A stretch of 64,000 nucleotides of DNA, taken from positions 1,054,001-1,118,000 of the forward strand of contig CM074813.1 in NCBI GenBank assembly GCA_037447605.1, given 5' to 3'. The stretch's first letter is position 1. Each line of letters begins with the position of its first letter. The translations under genes and the position numbers were made by a program. The stretch comes from Zygnema circumcarinatum SAG 698-1b (Eukaryota > Plantae > Zygnematophyceae). Below, piece after piece: positions 428 to 57,312 of this stretch. The notes below the pieces were generated by a model that did no database searches, was not told where the DNA came from, and saw only the letters and a program-made list of their open reading frames with translations.

Positions 428-3280
428 CTACTGCATGGCCCCAAACTCCAAAGGACGCAGAACGCTCACAGCCTGCGACACGTGCGAATGCGCCACGTGT
501 CCCCTCCCCATGGCGCCGCGACCTCCCAACTGTGGAGAAGGCGGCCAACCGCCTCTCCTTGCAGCCGATTTTAGGGTTCCGGGGGAGCCGAGCGTGGGTG
601 ACACGTGTCCTCCTCCCAGCAGACTCCCTGAGAGAGCTCCTCCTCCTCCTGTTCCTCCTCCTTGCGGCGCTGCCACGTGTCCTCGGAGAGAGGAAGAAGA
701 AGAGGACGAAAGGGTGCTGGTCATGGCGGGCATGGGCAGCTGCAGGCCCGGCATAGTGAGCAGGACCGCATCCTTTTCAGGAGGTTTAGGGTTTTGACGG
801 AACTGAGGGAGAGGTCTTGCTCTCATTACTTCATCGAGGAGCGGTCCTGCTTCCTCCACAGCCTTCAGAAGCTTTCCTTGGGAAGGGAGGGATCTGAGAA
901 GTACCGTTCTGTCAGCTTCAGGGGGTTCAGGAAGGTGGCGCTGCTGCAGATTTAGAGTTAAGGGGGGCAGGGGGATTTCAGGGCCGATTATGGAGTCCAT
1001 AAGGGTTGAACGGGTTGGCGACGAAAGTAGGGTTGGAGCAGGAGGTGAGATTAGGGTTGTGAGCCGCGGGAGATTGGTGAAGACTGGAAGAGGCGCCGCC
1101 GTAGCGAATGTTGTTGACGTTTTCGGCTCAGGGATGGGTAGGGGGGGCGGGAGAAATTCAGTTTTGAGGGTTTGCAGAGGCGAGGAAAGTTGTGAATGTG
1201 TGTCGGAGGAGGGAAGGTGCTGTTGTTCAGGAAGGGGATGATGCAGTTCCGCCTGCTGCTGATGATGTTGCCACTGCTGAGATGGATGATGTTGCGGATG
1301 TTTGTGATGGCGTTCATGCATGTTGTCTGAGTCCCTGGAATCTTCCGACCGCTCCTTCTTCAGGCTTGGCATCGCTCCCTGCGCCTCTATGTCCTCCTCG
1401 TGATCCAAATTCCGCTGCCGTTTCGGAACCGCCATCTGCAACTGCATCTGCACCTGCTGTTGCAGCTGATGCTTTGCTCCTGCTTGGAACTTGAGCTGCT
1501 GCTGCCTCTGATACTGCTTGGGCTGCTGCGGCTGTGGCAGAATATGCAGAGCCTGCATCTGCATCTTCATTTGCTGCTGCTTCAAATCCGCCTGCACGGC
1601 GTCCAGCTGCTGCAGGAGCTGCATGGAAGGGCTGCTTGAAGCTCCGGGAATCTGCGCTGCGAGCTCAGAAAGCTCCTTCAGCTGCTGCTGCACGTCGAGC
1701 TGTATCATGGTAGCAGGAAGCTCATGCCCCTCCAGCACTCCCTCCAAACCTCGATATCCTCCTCCTCCTCCTACTGCCACTCCAACTGACGTTGTTGCCG
1801 CTGCAGCAGAAGCCGCTACAGCCGCTACCGCCACAGCACCTCCCCCCCCTCTTCTCCCTTCCAACTGCTGCTTCAGCTCCTCTAGTTGTTGATGTTGCCG
1901 GAGCTCTTCTACCTGAATGCTCTCTAACTCCATGGCCAGCACCTGCTGGAGTTCCTCCTGCTGCTGCAGCTCCTTCTCCTGCTGCTTCATCTCCTCCTCC
2001 TCCTGCTGCTGCTGCTGCTGCTGCTTTGTCTCCTCAGAATACTCCGCTCCCCCCGGCTCTCCCGACATCTGCAGAAGCTCCTGCGCCAGCTTCTGCATGG
2101 GCTCCACCATGTCCTGCAGCTCCATCTGCTCCTCCAAACTGATGGGCGGCAGCTCCATGCTCTCCTCCAGCTGCTGCTGCTGCTGCTGCATCTGCCTGCA
2201 CACTTCGTTCAGAGTTGCAGAAACCACTGCCTCTGCAGTCATCTTCTCTGCGGGGAGGGTCCCAGCGAGGAGCGAATTCTCCTCCTGCGCGGAGGCGAGC
2301 GCGCGCTGCAGGTCCGCGGCGCGGCGCTGCTCGAGCGCGCACTGCTGCTGCGCGGCGAGGAGCCGCTCCGCGACCCTCTCCCGCTCGCGCCGCTCCGCGC
2401 AGAGCTGCTCCTCCAGCGCGCGCACGCGCTGCTCCTGCCACTCCGCCATCTCCGCCTGCACGAACCGCCGGATCTGCTGGAACCGCTCCGCGTCCTGAAA
2501 GGAAAATTTGAGAAAGAGAGGAGATAAATTAGAACGATGAAGTATGGGAGACGGTTGCTGCAGGGTCGTCCGCTCTCTCTCTCTCTCTCTTTCCTTCCTT
2601 CCTCCTTTCTTTAAGAACATGTATCCAAAACTGTCCAAGGGAGAGAGCATGGGTTCCCAAGTGGGTGGAAATTGTAGAATCTTTCAATTTCAATGCCAAT
2701 GAAAGGTGGAAAGTATTCAAGTACTTTTCAGTCAGCCGAAATCGCATCAACGAACAATTTGAAGGTATGTACTGTTTTGCAGATTTTTTTATAGAATCGT
2801 TTGAAAGCTATTTATGTCTTTTAACAAGATTTAATTTAGTTGAAACAGATTCCTGTCTTTAATAAAGCAATCGGCAGGATGCAATCATATTAATGTATTA
2901 ATGTCCTTTGAAACTGGCAGAGGCGAGCAGTGGAGGTGGGAGATAAGCAGTAAGAAGGGAGGGAGAAAGGGAGGGAGAGAGGGAGGGAGAGAGGGAGGGA
3001 GAGAGGGAGAGAGGGAAGGAGAGAGGGAGGGAGAGATTGTATAAGGCAAGGAACAAATTTTTTAAATGATGACGAGGGCGGCGAGGAGAGGGCGAGGCAC
3101 AGGGGAAGGAAGAGGGAGAGGGAAGAAGAAAAGAAGGCAGAGAGGGAGGCGTGGGAAAAAAAAGAGAGAGAAGAGGAGCGAGAGAGGAGGGACCCGGGAG
3201 GCAGATACCTGGAAGTGCTGGCAGCAGAGAGGCTGCACCACGTGTCGGGAGAGGAGCGGCTCCATGGCTGCAGCATCCAA
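428..3280 (-). CDS. DUF1635-like coiled-coil/polyQ protein; exons 3280-3209 and 2494-428
   Basis: Exon 1 MDAAAMEPLLSRHVVQPLCCQHFQ ends at CAG|GTATCT and joins in phase 0 to TTTCAG|GACGCG (DAERFQQ). It has an N-terminal coiled coil and long polyQ tracts. The motif LPSQGKLLKAVEEAGPLLDEVMRARPLPQFR resembles the plant DUF1635 signature LPEKGKLLQAVMxAGPLLQTLLLAGPLPQWR (recalled, not searched). The 3' end could contain an unseen intron. Confidence 0.75.
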
Positions 3281-15660: not shown

Positions 15661-18600
15661 GGCTCCGTCCTCTCTCTCTCTCCCTCTCCCTCCCTCTTTG
15701 GAGATATGAGAAAAAATGGGCCTTCAATGGGGAAATGATTGCCAAAAACCTAAATCCAAAAAGGAGGAAAAAAGAAAAGAAAAATGTGATTGAAAATTCC
15801 AGTGCAAATGGCCTTTATTAGAGGTAAGTCGCAGTTTCCTGGAACTAACCAGACTGTAGAAAGCTTGCGTAGAGAAAAATGTGAGACAGTGAAACGTTTT
15901 CTATTCTGTGCCGCTCTTGCCGTGCGTATAGCGATCCTTGCATTAATCGAGACTAAATCGAGATTAAATGAACACGCTTATCAAAAGTAAATTCCGGCGT
16001 CTTCAATATTTGTTCCAGAAATAGCCCATCTTTGAATGCAAGCATTCTTCCCGACAGGTAGAAACTTTCCTTCTGCTTAGTTTACGAAAAACTCGTGAAA
16101 TGTATTCTCCACTGCCAGAACGGTAAACTAGTTATAAACCAGAGTGGAAGCAAACATGCTCCTATATAATGGTTGATGGCTAATGATTAACATAATGCAC
16201 AGCCAGCTGCATTGCAGAGCCAAGCTCCAAATGCTGCAAGGAGATGCCGCATATTGAAGCAAGCCTCGACACCGCATACCACCGGTGATAATCAGAGAAC
16301 CAGACCATTAATTCCAGGAAAAGAACAGGAAACCTACCTGCAAATAACTGCAAATGGAAGACCTCCTTCTTGGATCCCTCCCTCCTGAAACCTTTCAAAT
16401 GCGTGATACCAAAGAGTGCACCGACAAGAAGCAGTTTCAGAGAGGGGCTATGGCTGCCTGAAGGGGCGCGCCATGGCGTGGGGAGCGCGGCGGGACCGCC
16501 GCCATGGCTGCTCCTTGCTGCTGCAGGGCAGGGCCAGCTGGCGACAGGGCTGGCAGAAGTGGTCGTCAAGCAGGGGCGGCGTTACAGGGAATCGGACCTC
16601 GTTCGTAAAATGATATCCAGAAAATTATTTTTCGGTTCAGGTTTGGTAAAGGTACGGTCGTCATTTTCGGGCAGAGGAAACATTTGGAATCTCTCTCCGG
16701 ATGGCGTGATTGGTGCCTGAACTTCTTTTGCTGGAAATTTCAGGTCTAGGGCAAGTCGGGCACATTTGGAAAAACTATTCTCAATTTTTTGGCACCTTCA
16801 AAAATATAGAAAAGACATGACCGACAAAATATAAGACTTCAACAGGACCTCCCAAATTTGGACCGATTCGGTCCAGGACACCTGTCGCCATCCCATTGTG
16901 TGGTTTCGCTCTGTTACGAAATTATCGAAGCCGTCGATCTCGACGATCTAACGGTCCATGTTAATAATTTGTCACGTGGCGCGTCGTGACTGGGTTACGA
17001 GTCCGGTAAGCCCTGCCCGTCGACGGGCGATCTGTCGTTTTGTCAGTCGGTCAGCGGCTCCCGCGGACAGGGAGGGAGGTTCTATGGACCGTATGATTCC
17101 AAAATCAAAAAATACGTTAATTACACTAAGGACCACTCATGACCTGCCACGTCACTCACGGAATTTACGCAACCTATCAGAAATCGTCACGCCATATACT
17201 AACACTTGTCGTTTTGTGGGAAGAAGTTAATGCCCAGATTCCCAAAATTGTCTCTTTACCGAGAACTGCCGACAATTAATTAATTCGATATTTGCCGCGG
17301 CTTAATGTACAAACGAAAACTAGTTTTCTTTCGAAAACCAAGTTTTCACATGCAATGGGTTCGACAAGTGAGTTGTCCAATAAAATAATAATCGCCACGT
17401 GGAAAACAAGTCATATGGTTCCAAATTTGGGTCCTTGAAATTAAAAAGTGTACGGACTCTCTAAACCACAACGACATTAGGGGGAGTCAGACCTTGACCA
17501 TCGCCCGCGGAATTGCAAGATTTCGACCGCGGAAAGGTATTGATTTCGATTTCCGAATTCGGATCGGAAACCACGGCTCCCCCCGAACCTGTCTGTCACG
17601 TCCGTACGGCGGAATAGGTTACAAAAATGCCCCCAAATTTCAGAATTCCGCGCTCCGAAACGGGGGGCCTCGGGAGGCCCCCCGTTTCGAAATTCCAGCT
17701 TTCCGCCGATGAGGAATCGTGCCCCGCCTTGTCGCCATGCGCGTCACGCACGTGCGAGCGTCTCTCTGCCGCCGCCCGGACGCCGCGACCCGCCGCCGCG
17801 CAGAGCAGCGTTTCAGTGCTGGCACAGGTTTAGGGTTTCGCTTCCCCCGGCACCAGCGTCCTCTTTCCGGCAACTGTGAGCACCACGGGAGAGCGGTGAG
17901 CGAAGACGCCAAGGCGACGAGGTACTCCCTCTCTATTCCCCTCTGTTGCTGTCTCCCTCGTCTCTCCCTCTCTGTTCCCCCTTTCTCTCTCTCTTGCTAT
18001 CTCCCTCTATCACTCTCGCCCTGTTATCTCTCCCACATTCTCCCCGCCTGTGCCACTCTGCCCTGCCTCCCTCGGCCTGGCCCATGCCTCCCTCGTCTCC
18101 CTTGCTGCTGCTTTTCTCGCTGCTTCGTTTTCTGCTGCTGCTGCTGCTTTTTCTGCTGCTGCCCCTGCTGCTGCACCAGCTGCTTTTAGTGCTCCTTCTT
18201 TCTCTGCTTCTGCTGCTGCTGCTGCTGTTTCTTTTTCAGCTGGTTTTGCTATTGTTGTGCTGTTGCTGCTGCTGCTGTTGTTGCTCCTGCCGTCTTTTCT
18301 GCTGCTGCTGCTGCTTTATTTGCTGCTGCTGCTGCCACTGCTGGTGCTCCTGCTTTTTTTGCTGCTTCTTCTCTGCTACTGCTGCTGCTTTTGCTTCTTT
18401 TTCTGCTACTGCTCTTTTTACTGCTTCTTTTTCTGTTGCATTTTTTGCTGTTTCTTTTCCTGTTGCTGTTGCTATTGTTGTTCTGCTGCTGCTGCTGCTG
18501 CTGATTTTTTTGCTGCTTCTTTTTCTGTTGCTTTTGTTGTTGCTTCATTCTCTGCTGCTGTTGCTATTGTTGTTCTGCTGCTGCTGCTGCTGCTGATTTT

Positions 18601-18930
18601 TTTACTGCTTCTTTTTCTGTTGCTTTTGTTGTTGCTTCATTCTCTGCTGCTGTTGCTATTGTTGTTCTGCTGTTGCTGCTGCTGCTGCTATTGCTGTGCT
18701 GCTGGTGCTGGTGCTGCTGTTGTCCTTTCTGCTGCTGCTTTTTCTGCTACTGTTGCAGCATTCATTTTCTTTTTTGCTACTGCATTCTTCTTCCGCATTC
18801 CGCATTGCCCTGTCCTTGTGCTTCCCGTTCCTTATGCTTGTGTTGTGTGTATGATTGCATATAATTCCTCCCCTTCCTTGTGCTTGTGTTGTGTGTATGA
18901 TTGCATATAATTCCTCCCCCTCCCCATTAA

Positions 18931-19001
18931 GTCGAAGTGGCGGATTGGTTACGCAACTGTTGCAAAACAGGAATAAAGGGGTTCAAATCCCCTCTTCGAC
19001 C
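18931..19001 (+). tRNA. tRNA-Cys(GCA)-like cloverleaf, copy 1; 6-nt anticodon loop, probably non-decoding
   Basis: GTCGAAG TG GCG GATTGGTTA CGC A ACTGT TGCAAA ACAGG AATAA AGGGG TTCAAAT CCCCT CTTCGAC C. Acceptor stem 7/7, T stem 5/5, D stem 3 bp, anticodon stem 4/5. A and B boxes are present. Confidence 0.75.
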
Positions 19002-20271
19002 TGCACTGTTCATTCATTCTTCCATTTGTATTCATTTATAGTTTTTGTGTTTGTGCTTCATGTCTTATATTTGTTGTTATTTTTCCTAGTTGTTTTTATT
19101 GCTTTTTGCCTTTTCCTTCAAAACTTTGAATACGTTTTACATCATATTTTCTTTTGAGCATATATAGGTAGTTTGCTAACAAAATTATGCCGGCACACTC
19201 AGGAAAAACTGTCTTCTTTGGTTTTTGGAAACCTTGGTGGTATAAGCAACCATATCAAGTGCGGCAATGGGCTGTATTTGATGCCATCAGTACAATTATA
19301 GAATCCCTTGTAACTGCGTGTGCTAAAAATCCAAAACGTCCGGACTTAGGAGAAACAAGCTGATAAAGGTGCAATTGATTCAACAACAATACAAAAAATA
19401 TCATTAGAATGATCGACGTGTGGGCAAAGGAGGGNNNNNNNNNNGGGAGAAACAAAACAAGCTGATATAGGTGCAATTGATACAACAACAATACAAAAAT
19501 ATAATTAGAAATAGAATGATGGACGTGTGGGCAAAGGAGGGACAACGTGGGTGGGGGTTGGAGGAAGAGGATCAACAAGAGAGACTGGAGAGGGTTGAGA
19601 TCCACTAAGGAGGAGAGTGAGAGTGAGTCAGGGATAAGGCATAAGAGGGAGACAACAACAAAGAAGACTGTAAGGAAGGGGCAAAGAACACTAGATGCTA
19701 AGATGTCACATACTAAGGGGGAAGGAGACACACGGGGTGGAACAAGAAGGGAAGTGACAGAAAAAAGAGAGGGCAAGACACAGCAAGGTAAGCGAAAGAG
19801 AGATAAGAAGGGAGGGGACAGGAAAGGGGGGGGGGAAGATGGAAGAACAAGGCAGGGAATAACAGAGAATGGAGCGTGAGAGGGAGAGAGAGTGGGAGGG
19901 AGGGAGCAAGTGAGCACACGGAGACAAACATGAGGAGAGATGGGCAAAAGAAAGGGTCGCAGGTGGCAAACTAGACGGACGTCTATATGAATAATCTTAA
20001 CAGACAGGAAGACAGTCTGTCAGCAGACCAGCCGTTCAAATGGAGTTTCCAAACACCAAGCTGCGAAGAGAGTGAAAAACAAAAAACAAACGCACCAAGG
20101 CCAGCATAAAGAGAGAGGAGGAAGCGGGTGAGGGATGGGGGGAATGCACAAACAACAGAAGTGAGAATGGGAGAGAGAGGGCACAAAGAGGGGGGAGGGG
20201 CAGAGAAAAAGCAAAAGAACAAACACAAAAACTATAAATGAATAAAAATAGAAGAATGAATAAATCGTACA

Positions 20272-20342
20272 AGTCGAAGAGGGGATTTGAACCCCTTTAT
20301 TACTGTTTTGCAACAGTTGCGTAACCAATCCGCCACTTCGAC
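20272..20342 (-). tRNA. tRNA-Cys(GCA)-like cloverleaf, copy 2; all stems perfect, U73, 6-nt anticodon loop
   Basis: Reverse complement reads GTCGAAGTGGCGGATTGGTTACGCAACTGTTGCAAAACAGTAATAAAGGGGTTCAAATCCCCTCTTCGACT. The anticodon stem ACTGT/ACAGT is 5/5. Confidence 0.78.
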
Positions 20343-20776
20343 ATAATGGGGAGGGGGAGGAATAACATGCAATCATACACAACACAAGCATAGGCAAAGG
20401 AACAGGCACCAGAAGAAGAAGAAGAAGAGGCAGCAGCAACAGCAGAAAAAGCAAGAGCAAAAAAAGCAGCAGCATAGAAAGCAGCAGCAACATCAACAGC
20501 TGCAGCAGGTGCTGCAACAGCAGTAGCAGCAAAAATAGCAAAAGCAGGAAAAGAAACACCACAAAAAGCTGCAGCAGCATCAACAGCAGCAGCAGCAACA
20601 GCAGCAGAAACAGCAGCACAAAACAAAATATGGTATACAAGGTATTCAAAATTTTGAAAGAAACTCAAAAAACAAAAAAAAAACAACTAAGATAAATAAC
20701 CACAAATATTTTACATCAAATGCACAAACACAAACACTATATATGAATCAAAATAAACAAATGAAAAAATAGTACG

Positions 20777-20847
20777 AGTCAAAGAGGGGATTTGAACCCC
20801 TTTATTACTGTTTTGCAACAGTTGCATAACCAATTTGCCACTTCGAC
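20777..20847 (-). tRNA. tRNA-Cys(GCA)-like cloverleaf, copy 3
   Basis: Reverse complement reads GTCGAAGTGGCAAATTGGTTATGCAACTGTTGCAAAACAGTAATAAAGGGGTTCAAATCCCCTCTTTGACT. The D stem is GCA/TGC and there is one G-U pair in the acceptor stem. Confidence 0.75.
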
Positions 20848-22135
20848 TTAATGGGGAGGGGGAGGAATAACACACAGTCATACACGCAACAAAAGCATAA
20901 GCGAAGGAACGAGAGGCACAAGCAAAGGAAGAGAAGACTGAGGCAAAGGCAACATAGCAAGGGGCAAAGGCAAAGGATGTCGGGGCAGGGGCAAGGGAGG
21001 TAAAATACGGAACGTGGAATGCGGAATGCGGAATGATGAATGAAGCAACAATACAAATAAAACAAAACCTACAGCAGCATTAGCATAAAAGCAAGAGCAA
21101 AAAAAGCAGCAGCAGCAGGAGCTGTAGCAGCAGCAGCAGGATAAGAAGCGGTTGGAGCTGCAGCAGTAGCAGCAGAAAAAGCAGCAACAGCAGTAGCAGC
21201 GGCAGCAGCACAACACAAAAACAATAGCAGAAACAGCAGATGAAGAAGAAGAAGAGGCAGCAGCAGCAGCAAAAAAACCAAAAGAAAAAAAGCGCCAGCT
21301 TAAAAAGCAGGAGCAACATCAACAACAGCAGCATAAAAAGCAGCAGCAGCAGCAGTAGCAAAAAGAGCACCAATGGAGACAAGGGGGGCATGAGCAAAGG
21401 CGAGGGAGGCAGGGGCAGGTGCAAGAGCACAGGAGGCAGGGGCAAGGGAAAGGGAGGCAGGGGGAAGGGCAGAGAAGGCAGGTGCAGAGGCAAGGGCAAG
21501 GGAGGCAGGTGCAAGGGCACGGGAGGCAGGGGCAAGGGTAAGGGAGGCAGGGGCAAGGGCAAGGACTCACCGCTGCTCAAGTCCGCCGTCGTCCCTAAAA
21601 ACCGATCGCGCTTTTGCCGTGGTCGACGGCACACCGCTCACCGTTCACCGTTCACTGGGGTGAGGCGAGAGGACGCTCTGCTCACTCCGCTGCAAGGATG
21701 GCTCGGGCGATGGCGAGGGAGGAGCCCTATACCCTAAACCCGAGGTGATCTGAGCTCGCAGCGAGCGAGCAGACGGGCAGGCGGCGGGCGCGAGGCGCCG
21801 CGGCGGGACGCCGCTCGAGCGGTGGTGACGCGCATGGCGACAAAACGGAGGGCGGCGGGCGGCGGGCAACGGAGGGAGCGCGTGGGGCCGAAAAGGGGGA
21901 GTCAGCCCTGGGCCGGAGATACGGAGGCAAAATAATTGCTCTCTGGAATTCGTGACGCCCGAGCCTGTCGAACGTCCACTTTTCGCGGAATTGGGCTGCC
22001 GTACAACGCGGAATTAGGGTCGGGGGTTTTCTGAATTGATTTGGCGCTGGTCTAAGTCTGACTCCCCCTATTGATGTCGAAAAAAACTGCATATCTGGTA
22101 CCTCATAACTGGCTAAGCATGGAACAGCGTGCATA

Positions 22136-22430
22136 CATGGAACGGCTCACTCGTGCAAGGGGCACTTAACAGAACTGCACTGATTTTAGATTCCATGCAC
22201 GGAACGGATACTGAACAATACTGAACTTTGGTCCTCATTTCATGCATGGAATAGTTCACTCGTGCAACGGATACTGACCAGAACTGAACTCGGGTTCAGA
22301 TTTCATGCATGGAACGGTCTACTCGAACAACGGATACTGAACAGGACTGAACTCTGGTCCAGATTTCATGCACAGAACGGTCCACTCGTACAACGGATAC
22401 TGAACAAAACTGGATTGAGTCCAGACTTCT
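22136..22430. repeat. 63-bp minisatellite (~4.5 degenerate copies)
   Basis: Units CAYGGAAcggtccACTCGtaCAACGGATACTGAaCAgaACTGaactcnGgtcCAGATTTCATG start at 22245, 22308 and 22371 (exact 63-bp spacing). Decayed units start at 22136 and 22198. Confidence 0.85.
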
Positions 22431-28042: not shown

Positions 28043-31000
28043 ATGGCGGCCCTGAACGTGAACGCGGGACTGTTAGGGCACATCGACAGCGGGAAGACGG
28101 CGCTCGCGCGCGCTCTGAGCACAGCGCTGAGCACCGCCGCGCTCGACCGCGCGCCGCAGAGCGCCGCGCGGGGCATCACGCTCGACCTCGGCTTCTCCGC
28201 GCTCACTGTGCGCGCTCCCCTCCGCGTTAATTTAACTGCAGATTAGGGTTGGAATTTTTGAAGTAATGGATTACGTTTTTTTTTAAATGGTTTAAGTCAC
28301 TGCTTTCTGGCTTACTTCTAATGGAGAGTAAGGTAGTTTCTGTTGCATTAGATGGTAAGGAAAGCAGGGTTACTGCCTCCTGCCTTCCTTCTGGTGCGGT
28401 TTAGGGTGACAATGATGAAGTTAGTAGCTTAAACTGTTAGGGTTAAGGCCCAGGTTAGAGTCAATACTTTGAAAGATTAAGACTTATAGTAAGAGCTAGA
28501 AGAATTAAATTTAATTTTACAACATGCAAACGATGTAATTGGCAATTAAAAACGCATCGACTTGAAAATGTGAGATTAAGAAGTTATAGTTTTCGTGAGA
28601 GGTGACGACGAAATTGTGAGGACTCTCAATTCGTACAGGGGGGAAATCTGATTTCTTTAAATTAAGTAATCAAACGAGGAGCTGAAAGGGTGTCAAGAGA
28701 ATGCACCGCGCTTGAGTAAGCGGACTTATGAAAGGAGATTAACTTCATGTTTTTTGGAAGAACCAACTTTTTAGTGCTTAAGTGAGGTTGGAAGGCACTG
28801 AGTTTAATTGTTTTTGTTAACATGAACTATTAATTCAATTCCACAAACATTTGTTTCCTGTTTCATCGTTTGATCGTTTGTCAAGGACATCTCTGCTGCC
28901 GCTTCCTCCCCTGACTTTGAAACTCCCCTCTCCTCCCCCTCCCTCTCCCACACTCTCCCCCCCTCCCTCTCCCACTCCGTCCCCATCCCTCTCCCTCTCC
29001 TCTCCTCCCCCTCACTTCCCATCCGCTCCCCTCCTTGTCCTTCTCCCCTCCTCCCTCTCCTCTCCCCCCCTCCCTCTCCCTCTCCCCTCCCTCCCCTCCC
29101 CTTCCCTCCTCCTCCCACTCTTCCCCTTCCCACTCCACTCTCTTCCTCCCTCTTCCACTCTCTTCCCCTACCTCTTCCTCGACTCTTCCGCCCTCCCGCT
29201 CCAACTTTTTCCCCCCTCCTCCCTCTCCCTCTTCCCCCCCCCCTCCCCTCACACTCCCATCGTTGCCCCCTCCTCCTCTCCCTCCCTCCTTCCAGGTAGA
29301 CATGCCCGAGCACCTGGCTGGTCTTCCGTACGAGAAGTTGCAGATTACCTTGGTGGACTGTCCCGGGCACGCCTCGCTCATTCGCACCATCATTGGCGGT
29401 TAGGCTAAATCCTATCTGTTGAATTCTCCTTTTTCTTTTTTCGTGAGGAAGGTAGGAGATGCCATATTTCATTTCACTTGAACTTTGCGATTTGCGTAGA
29501 AGTTGTACTAAGGTTTCTTTCATCACCTGCAGGAGCCCAAATCATCGACATTATGATTCTTGTGGTGGACGTCACGAGGGGGATTCAGACGCAGACGGCG
29601 GAGGTGCGTGCCGGAAACCAGGGCCAAATTAGGGCTAGGGTTTTACAGACGGTGAAAGCAGCAGCAGCACTGCAGGTCCTATTGAAGGCCTCCATTTGTG
29701 TCATCCTGTCCCTTCCTCAGAGTCGCATTGCAATTGCCCTTTTCCCTTCCCCCCTCACTGTGGCCCTCGCGGGGGGGCGGCAGAGCAGTGTCTGGTCGTG
29801 GGCGAGATCTCGCCGACCCGCTCCATGGTGGTCGCGCTCAACAAAACGGTGCGCCGCTTCGGCTTTTCACCTCTCGACTTGACTTGACTTGACTTGACTT
29901 GACTTGACTGTACTTGACTTGACTTGACTTAATATGAATACGTTTTTTTGGCAGGATCTCCTCCCTGAAGCCACAAAGCAACAACAAATTGAAAAGGTGT
30001 GCTTTCCTCTTACTACTCTGTCAAGAGCAGCTAATCTCAGTTCTCTTCCCCCCCTTTCTCTCTCTCTCGCTTTCGTTTTTCTCGCTCTGCCTCCCTCCCT
30101 CTCTCCCTCTCACTTCCTTTCCGAGTTTAGCCCTCCTTTCCTTATTCCCCTCTCTCTCTTTTTCTCCTTCCGCTTCTCCACTACGTCACAATAGACTTCT
30201 GCTCATGTTCCTCACAAAGTTCATGTCACATAGCATTCTCTCACTCCCGTCGTTTTTCTCGTCTCTATCTAATTGTCATGTTAAGGTTTTACTTTTCCAA
30301 GGATTCTCTTTTGGTTTTTGTTTCCCGGTCCACTATTTACGTCTATTTGCCTTATTTTTCATTTTCGCAACTTCGTAAAATTCTAGGTGCAGCGATGTCC
30401 CTTTGATGTATGAGTTTCAAGAATCGATGATAGTATAATTTCATGTACACCTGTTGAACTGCCAGGTGGCATTCTGTGATTGGATGCTTTTCAGATGAAA
30501 AAACGCCTCCGCGCCACTCTTAAGGGGACAAAATTTTCGGACTGCCCGATAGTAGCCACGGCAGCTCGCCCGGGCGGACCCGAAGTACGAAAATAATCTT
30601 CGAGATTTCTCGATGTTTCGAGACAAAAAAATTGTGGTGTAATGTAATGATGTTATGAACATCCTTTTCTAAGTTAAATGTGCCGATCTGTCTCAACATC
30701 CGCATGAAGGAAATGTGACATCGCTATTCGCAGTCCTAATCTCTGCGAGAGTGGCCTTCAGGGCGAGGCCGCGGGCCGCTCCGTACAAGGCGTCGGGGAG
30801 CTCGTCAAAGAGCTCACCGCCCAAGTGACAGGTCAGTGCTTGCTGCTGGGAGGGGGGAGGGNNNNNNNNNNGAGAGGTAGGGGAAGTGGGGGAGTGGGGG
30901 AGGCGGGAGGGGGCAGGGAGCAGGGGACAGGGGGGGAGTGGGGGAGGCCCCTTGAGCTCAGTCTGAGTGGCTTTTAGGGTTTCTCTTTTTGGAGGCAGAT

Positions 31001-40047: not shown

Positions 40048-43030
40048 ATGTTGGCAACACGTGTCGCGCAGCCGTACGCTGCTCTGCAGTATGACTGCCA
40101 CAGTGGCGTCCTGTCGTCGCGCCAGCTGTCCGCCTCCTCCGCCCCCCATCATTTACCCGACGCAATCTCACCATGTGCCCGAGCTCCCATCGCTGCTGCC
40201 AGGCTCCATGCGTCCGTTAGACGGAACAGATGCGGGCAGTTCCTATGCAGCAAAGATGTAGGTTTTAGGGTTAGTTCCGCGCAGGTGGCAGTGCGAGGCG
40301 TGGAGCTGCGGAGGAGGTTTGCGGAGAGCTGGGATGTGAACGGCCATTTGGGAGGAGCGAGGAGCTTCCGTACACTGCAGGAGACAGGTGGGGGCTAAGA
40401 GGGGGGTATAAGGGGGGATTGTTTGGGGGGGAAAATTGGGGGGGGGGGGGGGGAGGGGGGAAGGAGAGGAGGGAGAGAGGGGAGAGAGTGTTGGGTGGAA
40501 GGAGGAGAGGGGTGGGAGGGAGTGGAGGAAGGATTGTATGATTGGCGAAGTGGGGAGAGGGAGGGGCACGGGAGAGAGGAGCGGAGAAGAAGGATGGGGT
40601 AAAACAGAGCGGAGAAATTAGCGACAAGAGTTGGTGGGGGCAAGAAAAGGGATTGAAGGGACGACGAGGAAAGAGGGTTCAAGTTGGTGTGGGAGAGCGA
40701 GAGGGGTTTGGGGGGGGAGTGAGAACCGGAGTTAGTGATGGAGCCAGAAAGAGTCCACATTTTGTTTGGGTTATGGACTGTAAGCTCATGTAAGGCTCAG
40801 CAGGGCGGAAAGAGATGCTGTCATTGTGAAAGTTGATCAAACCTATGTTCCAGCTCAAACATTCCGCAAGCGAAAAGGCTCCACCTGCTTGCTCGTTTTG
40901 CCACGGTTTCTTCGGTGGTCGTCAAATGTTCTACTTCCTGGTTTTTAAGCTGTTATAGTTTAAATCGTTTGGAGCAGTTACGGTTGCCGAGCTTAATATT
41001 TTCACTGAAAAAATAAATGGGATGTCATTAGCATACATTTGAGTGGCAAAAATCGGGAGCTGGACGTGTTGGATTCATGAGGAGAAGTTGATGAGCTGAA
41101 GATTATGAGCTCACACATGTCCTCTTCCTTACTCCCTTGCCCTCTCCCTCTCTCTGCAGCCCTAGAGAGGAGGCGTGCGAGTGCCAGCGGTCAAGCACGC
41201 GCATCATTATTGGGAGTGGGAGCGCCGGAAGCGCTCGTCATCGCTGTGGTGGCCCTTCTTGTGTTCGGCCCTAAAGGCCTTGCTGAGGTCAGCAACTGCA
41301 TGCAGAATTCACACACGTCCCTTGCTGAGGTCAGCGTAGCAGAAGCGGGACGCATGTAATGGTTCTGCTGAAGTCAGCACAGCGGAAGCAGACAGCAGAA
41401 TGCTGCAAGATACTGGGTGAGAAGAAGGGCATTATGTGGAGTCTTGTATCGTTGCTGATCAACGATGGATTTGAGGCAGTACTAATGGCAGTTCGTGAGT
41501 GCACGAGTACAAATGACAGGTCTAATGCAGTTGTGGAGATGGGTCGGGATTTTGACTTAAGTGCAGGTGGCCCGCAATCTTGGCAAGACGTTGAAGGCCT
41601 TCCAACCCACCATCAGAGAGCTGCAGGTATGTTGACTTTTTAACCGTTTAATGCAGTACTTTTTGGAGGAAGCAGATAGATATCTCTGTAGAGTCGGGAA
41701 AATGTATATCTCTGAAAAGGGACACGTAATACAACCTGGCTTTAGAATTATGAAATTCGTGGAATTGCTGGCAAAAGAAGCACAAGATACCCTAAAATTT
41801 GAAAGTCCAGGAATCTCTGACTGATGTTTTCATAAGGTGGCTATATAGAAGCTGAAACAAACTTTGCCTCATTTTCATAGGTAGGAGCCCATCACAGTGT
41901 TTGAGGACGTCTGACTGTCAAGAAATAAAGCACTGGATAGGTGATTAAGAACTGGACCTATCCCACTGTTATCCAAAATTTACCGCCTTTTGACTTAACT
42001 GAACTATAGACCGCGTTTGAAATTCTGATTGCTTCTATCCTCCTTCATACTTTTCTGTTGAATTATAGAATGTTAAACTTTCCCTACTGGACCTAACCAA
42101 TTGCCTCTTCTCATCTGTGCATAGGATGTATCTCGCGAATTCCGTTCGACTCTTGAGCAAGAAATCGGCCTTGATGAGCTGCGGCAGCCGTACCGTGCTC
42201 CCCCCACTGCTCTCCCTCCATCTACTCCATCCACATCCCTCCCTTCTTCGCCCCCTTCGGCTCCCACAAAAGATGGAGATTCCAGTGTTGGAACATCCGC
42301 ATCACTCCCGAAAGGTGAAGTTCAATCACGAATTGTGCACCAATTTAAGTCATTGAACTTATTCATATGATGCCAGATTATGGTAGCATGACCAGATCAA
42401 ATGTTATTCAGAGTCGGGGTTAATGCAGGCAGCTTAGCCCTAATTAAAGTAGAAGGAATGACACGAGCTGTTTGATTTGATGTCCCAGGATGTCGGTGTT
42501 ATTGTGGCTATCTCTTCACATGCATGCATACGGATGCAATTTGAAAAGCTGAAAGTTGTGGGAATTGGGGTCTCAGAACTTTCAGCGTATTCAGCAGAGG
42601 ACTATGCGCGCGTGACAGAGGAACAAGCACGGTCGCTTGTGTCTGAGGACATGCGAAAAGGTGAGGAGAGGCCAAGCGAGAAAGGGAGAGGAAGTGGGAG
42701 AGCACTTTCTTGGCTGCTCTGAACCTTTGTTACCCTCCTCTTTCTCTCTCCCTCTCCTCTCTCTCTCTTTCTTTCTTTCTCTCTCTCTCTCTCTTCTCGC
42801 TTCACTCTCTACTTGTCTTTTCTGTGTTTTTTAATTTTCATATGCGATGGTTTTGTGGGTTCACAGCGGCTGCGGCTGCAGCTTGGGGAGGTGCACCTCC
42901 TCCACCTCGACCTCAGGGCGGCGCAGCGCCTGCGACTGAACTGGGCACTCAGCCGCCGGCCGCCGCGGGGGCGATAACGAAGGAGGCCACTGAAAGTTCG
43001 AAAGTGGGAGGGGATGCTCCGAGGCAATGA
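40048..43030 (+). CDS. HCF106: Thylakoid Tat translocase subunit TatB (HCF106)
   Basis: A transit-peptide exon is followed by ASLLGVGAPEALVIAVVALLVFGPKGLAE|VARNLGKTLKAFQPTIRELQ|DVSREFRSTLEQEIGLDE and AYSAEDYARVTEEQ. Stop at 43030. Confidence 0.93.

Positions 43031-51520: not shown

Positions 51521-57312
<5,792 letters not shown>

Follow-up and report, generated by a model that had tools for sequence, protein, structure and literature searches.

The stretch of DNA analysed here, called the window throughout, comprises 64,000 nucleotides (nt) of contig CM074813.1 (positions 1,054,001 to 1,118,000, forward strand) from Zygnema circumcarinatum SAG 698-1b. The window carries three tRNA-Cys-like genes of 71 nt each, which together make up the ARAGORN total for the 64 kb. 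All three are located within one non-coding, TA-flanked element at 17480-22068, which measures 4.6 kb as assembled across a run of Ns. Copy 1 lies in the left arm of this element and copies 2 and 3 lie in the right arm, with all of them facing the centre. The copies are listed below.

18931-19001 (+): tRNA-Cys-like copy 1, with an A27-G43 mismatch and C73
20272-20342 (-): tRNA-Cys-like copy 2, with every stem paired and U73
20777-20847 (-): tRNA-Cys-like copy 3, with G4-U69, A12-U23, A13 and U73

A sequence-only reading had placed three tRNA-Cys-like genes here, and two programs recovered them: ARAGORN found exactly three, and the Rfam model RF00005 matched copies 1-3 over its full length with scores of 46.4, 52, and 49 bits, respectively (E-values 1e-6 to 3e-8; gathering score, 29). 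No further tRNA and no further Rfam family reached threshold in the 64-kb window, and no small nucleolar RNA or other RNA adjoining the units was detected with Rfam at a permissive threshold.

To describe the fold, the copies were scored against a cloverleaf with an acceptor stem of 7 bp, a D stem of 3 bp, an anticodon stem of 5 bp, a 6-nt loop UGCAAA and a T stem of 5 bp. Standard pairs occupied 59 of the 60 pair cells across the three copies. The stems, earlier described as perfect, are therefore nearly so, the departures being the A27-G43 mismatch of copy 1 and the G4-U69 pair of copy 3. The 3-bp D stem is accompanied by a G13/A22 mismatch, which is A13/A22 in copy 3. Both the A box and the B box are intact in all copies, as had been proposed, with the qualification that the A box of copy 3 reads GGCAA for GGCGG; these changes fall at free positions of the box, and a matching A12-U23 pair replaces G12-C23. 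Runs of T follow each copy downstream. The copies differ from one another at 2-6 positions, and their flanks differ as well. Free-energy folding of the copies gave z-scores of -3.1 to -5.0.

The anticodon arm is the part in which all three copies depart from a working tRNA-Cys. Each of the three RF00005 alignments lacks one position on the 5ʹ side of the anticodon stem, in agreement with the 6-nt loop previously noticed as common to the copies. Thus, the arrangement of a working tRNA-Cys, a 7-nt anticodon loop with U33 and with GCA at positions 34-36, is found in none of them. In the minimum-energy folds predicted for copies 1 and 3, the anticodon arm would instead form a 5-6-bp helix closed on GCAA, a tetraloop of the GNRA type. 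U73 and the GCA anticodon are identity elements for CysRS. Reading the aligned copies gave U73 in copies 2 and 3 only, as had been claimed, and C73 in copy 1.

The carrier element was delimited by its ends, and the features of its termini and arms, in order from left to right, are as follows.

17478-17479: TA of the left flank, a candidate target-site duplication that matches the TA at 22069-22070
17480-17505 (+): left terminal inverted repeat of 26 nt, starting with GGGGGAGTCAGAC, 23/26 identical to the right end
17729-17747 (+): 19-nt subterminal box TTGTCGCCATGCGCGTCAC of the left arm, exact, about 250 nt from the left end
17827-17836 (+): telomere-repeat or telobox-like motif GGTTTAGGGT of the left arm
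21731-21740 (-): telobox-like motif GGTTTAGGGT of the right arm
21825-21843 (-): 19-nt subterminal box TTGTCGCCATGCGCGTCAC of the right arm, exact and in inverted orientation
22043-22068 (-): right terminal inverted repeat of 26 nt, located by pattern search
22069-22070: TA of the right flank, read directly

The terminal repeat pattern has 2 matches in the window, compared with 0.00 expected. The candidate target-site duplication consists of TA on both sides, and at 2 bp it is weak evidence; the next bases of the flanks mirror each other too (CGACAT). Past the TA, the mirrored flanks (17472-17479 and 22069-22079) read CGACAT-TA on the left and TA-TTG-ATGTCG on the right. Two explanations offer themselves, a near-palindromic target or true inverted ends that extend a few bases further. 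The 19-nt box has 2 exact matches, where 0 are expected, at 225-250 nt from the ends, within arm sequence that is otherwise only about 50% alike, and it is a candidate subterminal binding site for a transposase. The motif GGTTTAGGGT has 4 matches in the window, compared with 0.09 expected; each arm has one that points inward, and the others are at 783-792 and 28398-28407. On this motif evidence, the arms may carry a host-like piece of an RNA polymerase (Pol) II promoter. In each arm, the telobox-like motif is followed by a splice-donor-like GT, located near 17913 (left arm) and near 21570 (right arm).

Seven open reading frames (ORFs) of at least 150 aa in the element gave no Pfam match, and these ORFs are of low complexity. 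The element appears to have no transposase of its own, and its structure points to a non-autonomous DNA transposon with terminal inverted repeats (TIRs), of a foldback-like type. No second copy of the element was present within the 64-kb window. A tandem array of three to four 63-nt units, 81-85% identical, occupies 22203-22412, about 130 nt past the right end of the element.

Within the element, each tRNA-like body is the middle part of a larger repeated cassette, the components of which are listed below.

18050-18880 (+): GCT-rich low-complexity stretch upstream of copy 1 (repeat families D1, D2, and D5; inverted pairs I3-I25; BLAST identity of 69-73%)
18823-18914 (+): 46-nt tandem duplication of the upstream part of the cassette, at copy 1 only (family D12, 96% identical)
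18881-19058 (+): conserved cassette core of copy 1, 92% identical to 20215-20390 on the opposite strand
20215-20390 (-): conserved cassette core of copy 2, from BLAST self-comparison
20717-20937 (-): conserved cassette core of copy 3 (repeat family D10, 85.6% identity over 222 nt)

The homology among the copies extends at least 50 nt upstream of the tRNA-like body. Downstream, all three copies share 60 nt, and copies 1 and 3 remain alike for about 160 nt. The 20 nt directly 5ʹ of the body are invariant across the three copies. Copies 2 and 3 are tandem units with a spacing of 505 nt. The reverse complement of the GCT-rich stretch, which is CAG-rich, stands upstream of copies 2 and 3, so that each unit is preceded by GCT-rich sequence in its own orientation. 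The C-rich tract before the tRNA was also considered as a splice acceptor, a reading that was rejected since copy 2 does not retain the AG. ORFs crossing the unit were tried as a route to further copies or transcripts, and nothing was found by a protein word search and two exact look-ups.

To determine what kind of tRNA the copies descend from, the D arm was scanned with three degenerate positions at the class-I distance to GGTTCRAATCC in one genome per bacterial or archaeal species, which returned at least 120 loci; the pattern used for the prokaryote-type test was GGCG(G/A)ANUGGUNACGC with class-I spacing to the T loop. On the listed bacterial and archaeal loci, ARAGORN made 117 tRNA-Cys(GCA) calls versus 10 others. 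In phage-type or viral contigs with the D-arm pattern, 7 of 9 matches were tRNA-Cys, the best of them identical at 55/72 positions at most. A total of 109 relatives among the matches listed were parsed. Their anticodon loop was 7 nt long in 109/109, with 91 CUGCAAA, 6 UUGCAAA (together YUGCAAA in 97/109), and 8 CUGCAGA. The CUGCAGA loop was found in the archaeal members examined, and A37 is carried by the bacterial relatives. These counts support the impression that the D loop and A37 look bacterial, organellar or viral, and they would set the tRNA-Cys-like units apart from the ordinary cytosolic tRNA-Cys of eukaryotes. To our knowledge, plant cytosolic tRNA-Cys has a different D arm.

The commonest D arm among the parsed relatives, GGCGGAGTGGTTACGC, was found in 53 of the 109 and is one base off that of the unit (G15 versus U15); among the matches listed, its carriers were mostly Alphaproteobacteria and Patescibacteria. 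The exact D arm of the unit was seen in locus L125, a metagenomic tRNA-Cys whose CCA end is encoded; this was the one tRNA-Cys obtained when metagenomes were scanned for the exact U15 D arm, the remainder being His and Asn tRNAs with a different D stem. The closest relative among the matches listed, L089 from Candidatus Peribacteria, is identical at 58/72 positions and has the loop UUGCAAA. It aligns to the unit with a single gap, which falls in the T-run at the junction of stem and loop. Judged by these alignments, the unit is a prokaryote-type class-I tRNA-Cys that has lost one T at this junction. The GC content of the units is 41-49%, compared with a mean of 61% in the bacterial set, and this would fit an AT-rich donor such as an organelle, for example a mitochondrion.

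Exact searches with the diagnostic anticodon arm, both in its deleted form and with the lost base restored, gave no match in metagenome or viral contigs, and exact searches with the acceptor stem (GUCGAAG) and the end of the T arm gave none in bacterial and archaeal genomes or in viral contigs. A class-II (Leu-CAA-like) origin, which the D arm had prompted, was rejected, as the variable region is 5 nt and the D-arm pattern picks Cys. Two contigs of alphaproteobacterial metagenome-assembled genomes (L064 and L099) carry tRNA-Cys-like genes with a D arm of the type of the unit, and ARAGORN reads there only the 4-base anticodon tgca in an 8-nt loop, CUUGCACG. As called from these two loci, odd-sized anticodon loops are also present in bacteria of this tRNA-Cys lineage.

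We favour the reading, with a rough probability of about 0.6, that the three copies are amplified relics, carried as cassette cargo by a non-coding cut-and-paste element, which do not decode and are perhaps still bound or transcribed by Pol III. The cassette consists of about 50-75 nt of upstream sequence, the 71-nt tRNA-like body and 60-160 nt of downstream sequence, placed after a GCT-rich stretch, and is built on a tRNA-Cys(GCA) gene of prokaryote or organelle type. One T had been lost from the T-run at the junction of anticodon stem and loop before the amplification. The outcome is a 6-nt loop or, equally, a 6-bp helix with a GCAA (GNRA-type) tetraloop, and the anticodon could presumably not be presented in the normal way. 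The copy number and the common defect would then have come from cut-and-paste spread and local tandem duplication and not from tRNA function; for transposon cargo, multiplicity and a shared defect are explained without any such function. With its A box, B box and downstream T-runs preserved, each cassette may still be recognised by TFIIIC and Pol III and could yield a short tRNA-shaped RNA.

If the copies are indeed relics, they pass tRNA finders with 46-52 bits and yet cannot decode, and they should be masked when tRNA genes are counted or the codon-anticodon supply is estimated. They would also record that a prokaryote- or organelle-type tRNA gene was spread by a cut-and-paste transposon and not by retroposition.

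Some of the results weigh against cargo of this kind. No donor tRNA closer than 81% identity was present in the collections searched, and a mitochondrial insert and a bacterial or viral transfer are both candidate origins. Further, plain neutral cargo does not predict that the tRNA block should be better conserved than its surroundings. When the two arms were aligned globally, they were about 50% identical, while the window of the alignment that holds the tRNA reached 91.5%. Only 1.6% of 71-nt windows scored as high, and the ten best all overlapped the unit plus about 14 nt upstream. In the three-way alignment, the numbers of variable columns were 6/71 in the body, 9/50 upstream, and 20/62 downstream, and the body was significantly less variable than both flanks together (29/112 columns; p=0.004).

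These conservation data support a second explanation, which we regard as possible and clearly the less probable of the two: the cassette has been selected as a functional, non-decoding component of the transposon or the host. It would act as a tRNA mimic, either as an internal Pol III promoter or TFIIIC-bound boundary or, in the manner of mascRNA or a t-element of plant mitochondria, as an RNase P/Z signal in longer inward transcripts. No other block of the arms is as well conserved as the body with its adjoining 45 nt or so of upstream sequence, the A and B boxes and nearly all stem pairs are kept as described above, and the promoter-like telobox of each arm has the same direction as the tRNA-like unit of that arm. 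However, pairwise contrasts that count substitutions only were borderline (p=0.057-0.080), and the upstream flank is about as conserved as the body, the difference being not significant (p=0.16), which means that the signal does not single out the fold. With three copies, stem covariation was not significant either, as 194 of 500 shuffles reached the observed score. Moreover, the sole two-sided change, the compensatory A12-U23 pair of copy 3, can be explained by two ordinary CpG transitions, because the CpGs pair across the stem strands. Each of the four changes of copy 3 is a G:C-to-A:T transition, and CpG sites account for three (G12A, C23T, and C69T). This pattern looks like the decay expected in methylated repeats.

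On the suggestion that the retained pairing makes the fold matter, the evidence is divided: the body is less variable than its flanks taken together, but neither the comparison with the upstream flank nor the covariation supports a role of the fold itself. The identity between the arms jumps from 0.39 to 0.86 at about 18870-18885, which suggests that the cassette has a younger or more homogenised history than the rest of the arms. The excess conservation over the block from about -45 to +73 is real but modest. This block is what a Pol III unit needs, namely the upstream region, the A box and the B box; gene conversion between the inverted or tandem cassettes could also produce the same picture. 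Under the favoured reading of relic cargo, the better conservation of -45 to +73 would reflect either the youth and homogenisation of the cassette or a mild constraint on a Pol III unit. If selection were nevertheless responsible, this would be a DNA transposon that keeps a Pol III or tRNA-like module for its own regulation.

A specific device of this kind can be proposed, although we consider it rather improbable. A GNRA-capped tRNA mimic facing inward would recruit TFIIIC and Pol III or be cut by RNase P/Z. If this were true, inward or read-through transcripts would be broken or insulated, the mirrored arms would not be transcribed into a single long hairpin RNA, and the element would escape RNA-guided silencing.

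That the copies are working tRNAs is very unlikely. They would have to be either tRNA-Cys tolerated with a 6-nt loop or frameshift suppressors with an 8-nt loop that reads the quadruplet GCAA. The only reading that ARAGORN offers for the three copies, the 4-base anticodon gcaa, would suit the latter, and U73 and the letters GCA in copies 2 and 3, together with the T-runs after each copy, are compatible with a functional gene. However, the tRNA-Cys relatives described above include not one loop of a size other than 7 nt (0/109), an 8-nt loop requires a 4-bp stem where folding favours a 5-6-bp stem with a tetraloop, and copy 1 is without U73 and without one stem pair. The units also lie within a transposon and have decaying CpGs, a prokaryote-type body is not expected in a cytosolic system, and a multiplied frameshift suppressor would do harm. 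The frameshift-suppressor role that the sequence-only reading had listed among its possibilities is therefore unlikely.

Less credible still is the view that the units are heads of a tRNA-derived short interspersed nuclear element (SINE) or scattered retro-pseudogenes. A SINE, too, would be expected to present a tRNA-like body with A and B boxes in several copies. A SINE head is nevertheless excluded because it must begin at the tRNA 5ʹ end, and here the homology reaches at least 50 nt upstream of that end; the earlier doubt that these are SINE heads is thereby supported. In addition, neither an A-rich or simple-repeat tail nor a target duplication flanking each unit was seen, and the copies sit in the mirrored arms of a TIR element.

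The assembly gap required separate attention. The N run at 19435-19444 is in the centre of the element, separated from copy 1 by 433 nt and from copy 2 by 827 nt. It touches no copy, and no reading frame relies on it. A pair of direct repeats of about 85 nt adjoins it:

19353-19434 and 19455-19541: direct repeats, 87.5% identical (families D13 and D14), with the N run at their junction

The join across the N run is plausible, as far as the sequence on either side tells, with the contig ends both lying in one local repeat. Copy 1 is placed in inverted orientation to copies 2 and 3 across this run, and this layout is independently supported because the element ends at 17480 and 22068 match in inverted orientation across the gap. 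The least probable idea of all is that an assembly error at the gap created the triplication or the inverted layout. The position of the gap between copies 1 and 2, with near-duplicate sequence on either side, could be cited in its favour; against it stand this match of the ends, the mutual differences of the copies and their flanks, and the location of copies 2 and 3 on one contiguous stretch.

Some other features of the window were observed. Sub-threshold matches to plant microRNA precursors (25-35 bits, compared with gathering scores of 64-96) occur at 42649-42801 on both strands and at 53060-53215; these are probably hairpin-forming inverted repeats, such as miniature inverted-repeat transposable elements, and not microRNA genes. 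An ORF at 51521-52324 (+) ends with the first 33 or so residues of a class-I methionyl-tRNA synthetase domain (PF09334, E 1.5e-5) and is probably the first exon of a MetRS gene, judging by this partial domain. A 740-aa ORF at 428-2650 (-) contains the plant domain DUF1635 (E 1.6e-8).

Compared with known systems, the body of the unit is closest to bacterial tRNA-Cys(GCA), notably that of Alphaproteobacteria and Patescibacteria, and by descent to organellar tRNA-Cys, with a D arm that is one base off or identical (L125). Bacterial tRNA-Cys also shares with it the G13/A22 mismatch, a variable region of 5 or 4 nt, GCA followed by AA, the T loop UUCAAAU and U73. In contrast, the unit has a 6-nt loop, U15 for G15, AU-rich stems (in line with the GC values given above) and the acceptor GUCGAAG; unlike bacterial tRNA-Cys, it is also nuclear, repeated and borne by a transposon.

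A precedent for a bacterial-type tRNA-Cys entering a genome of the plant lineage is provided by angiosperm mitochondria. These are described as containing a bacterial, horizontally transferred cysGCA (Kubo 2000 and Kitazaki 2011, as cited in PMC8662596), which by these accounts is a single-copy mitochondrial gene and, according to the title of Kitazaki 2011 (cited in PMC8662596), is aminoacylated. The likeness to the present units is one of description.

As in tRNA-derived SINEs, a tRNA-like body with A and B boxes has been multiplied here. Unlike in SINEs, the tRNA is not the starting point of the unit, which has neither a tail nor a target duplication of its own and moves, if at all, within a cut-and-paste element. 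The mascRNA of MALAT1 and the t-elements of plant mitochondria are non-decoding, tRNA-shaped modules that RNase P/Z could release from longer RNAs, and the present units resemble them in shape only. More generally, the tRNA gene counts of some streptophyte algae are probably inflated by transposon proliferation, according to a review (PMC13578239).

A partial literature search returned no description of a TIR element with mirrored cassettes of a prokaryote-type tRNA-Cys, or of a shared 6-nt loop, and the nearest published parallel found is the tRNA-Cys cluster of Arabidopsis thaliana, which consists of repeat units of about 0.4 kb (about 420 bp) that overlap Helitron annotations (PMC10701932). 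The Arabidopsis units are 84-94% identical, some have stem-breaking variants, and a pseudogene adjoins them (PMC10701932). The genes themselves are ordinary cytosolic tRNA-Cys genes, mostly of high confidence, and 11 of the 13 sequence variants are expressed (PMC10701932). What the two cases have in common is that tRNA-Cys(GCA) units recur within repeats several hundred bp long (505 nt in Zygnema) and associated with transposon sequence. The Zygnema units are distinguished from the Arabidopsis cluster by their prokaryotic-type body, by a disabling deletion that is present in every copy, and by a TIR carrier with mirrored arms.

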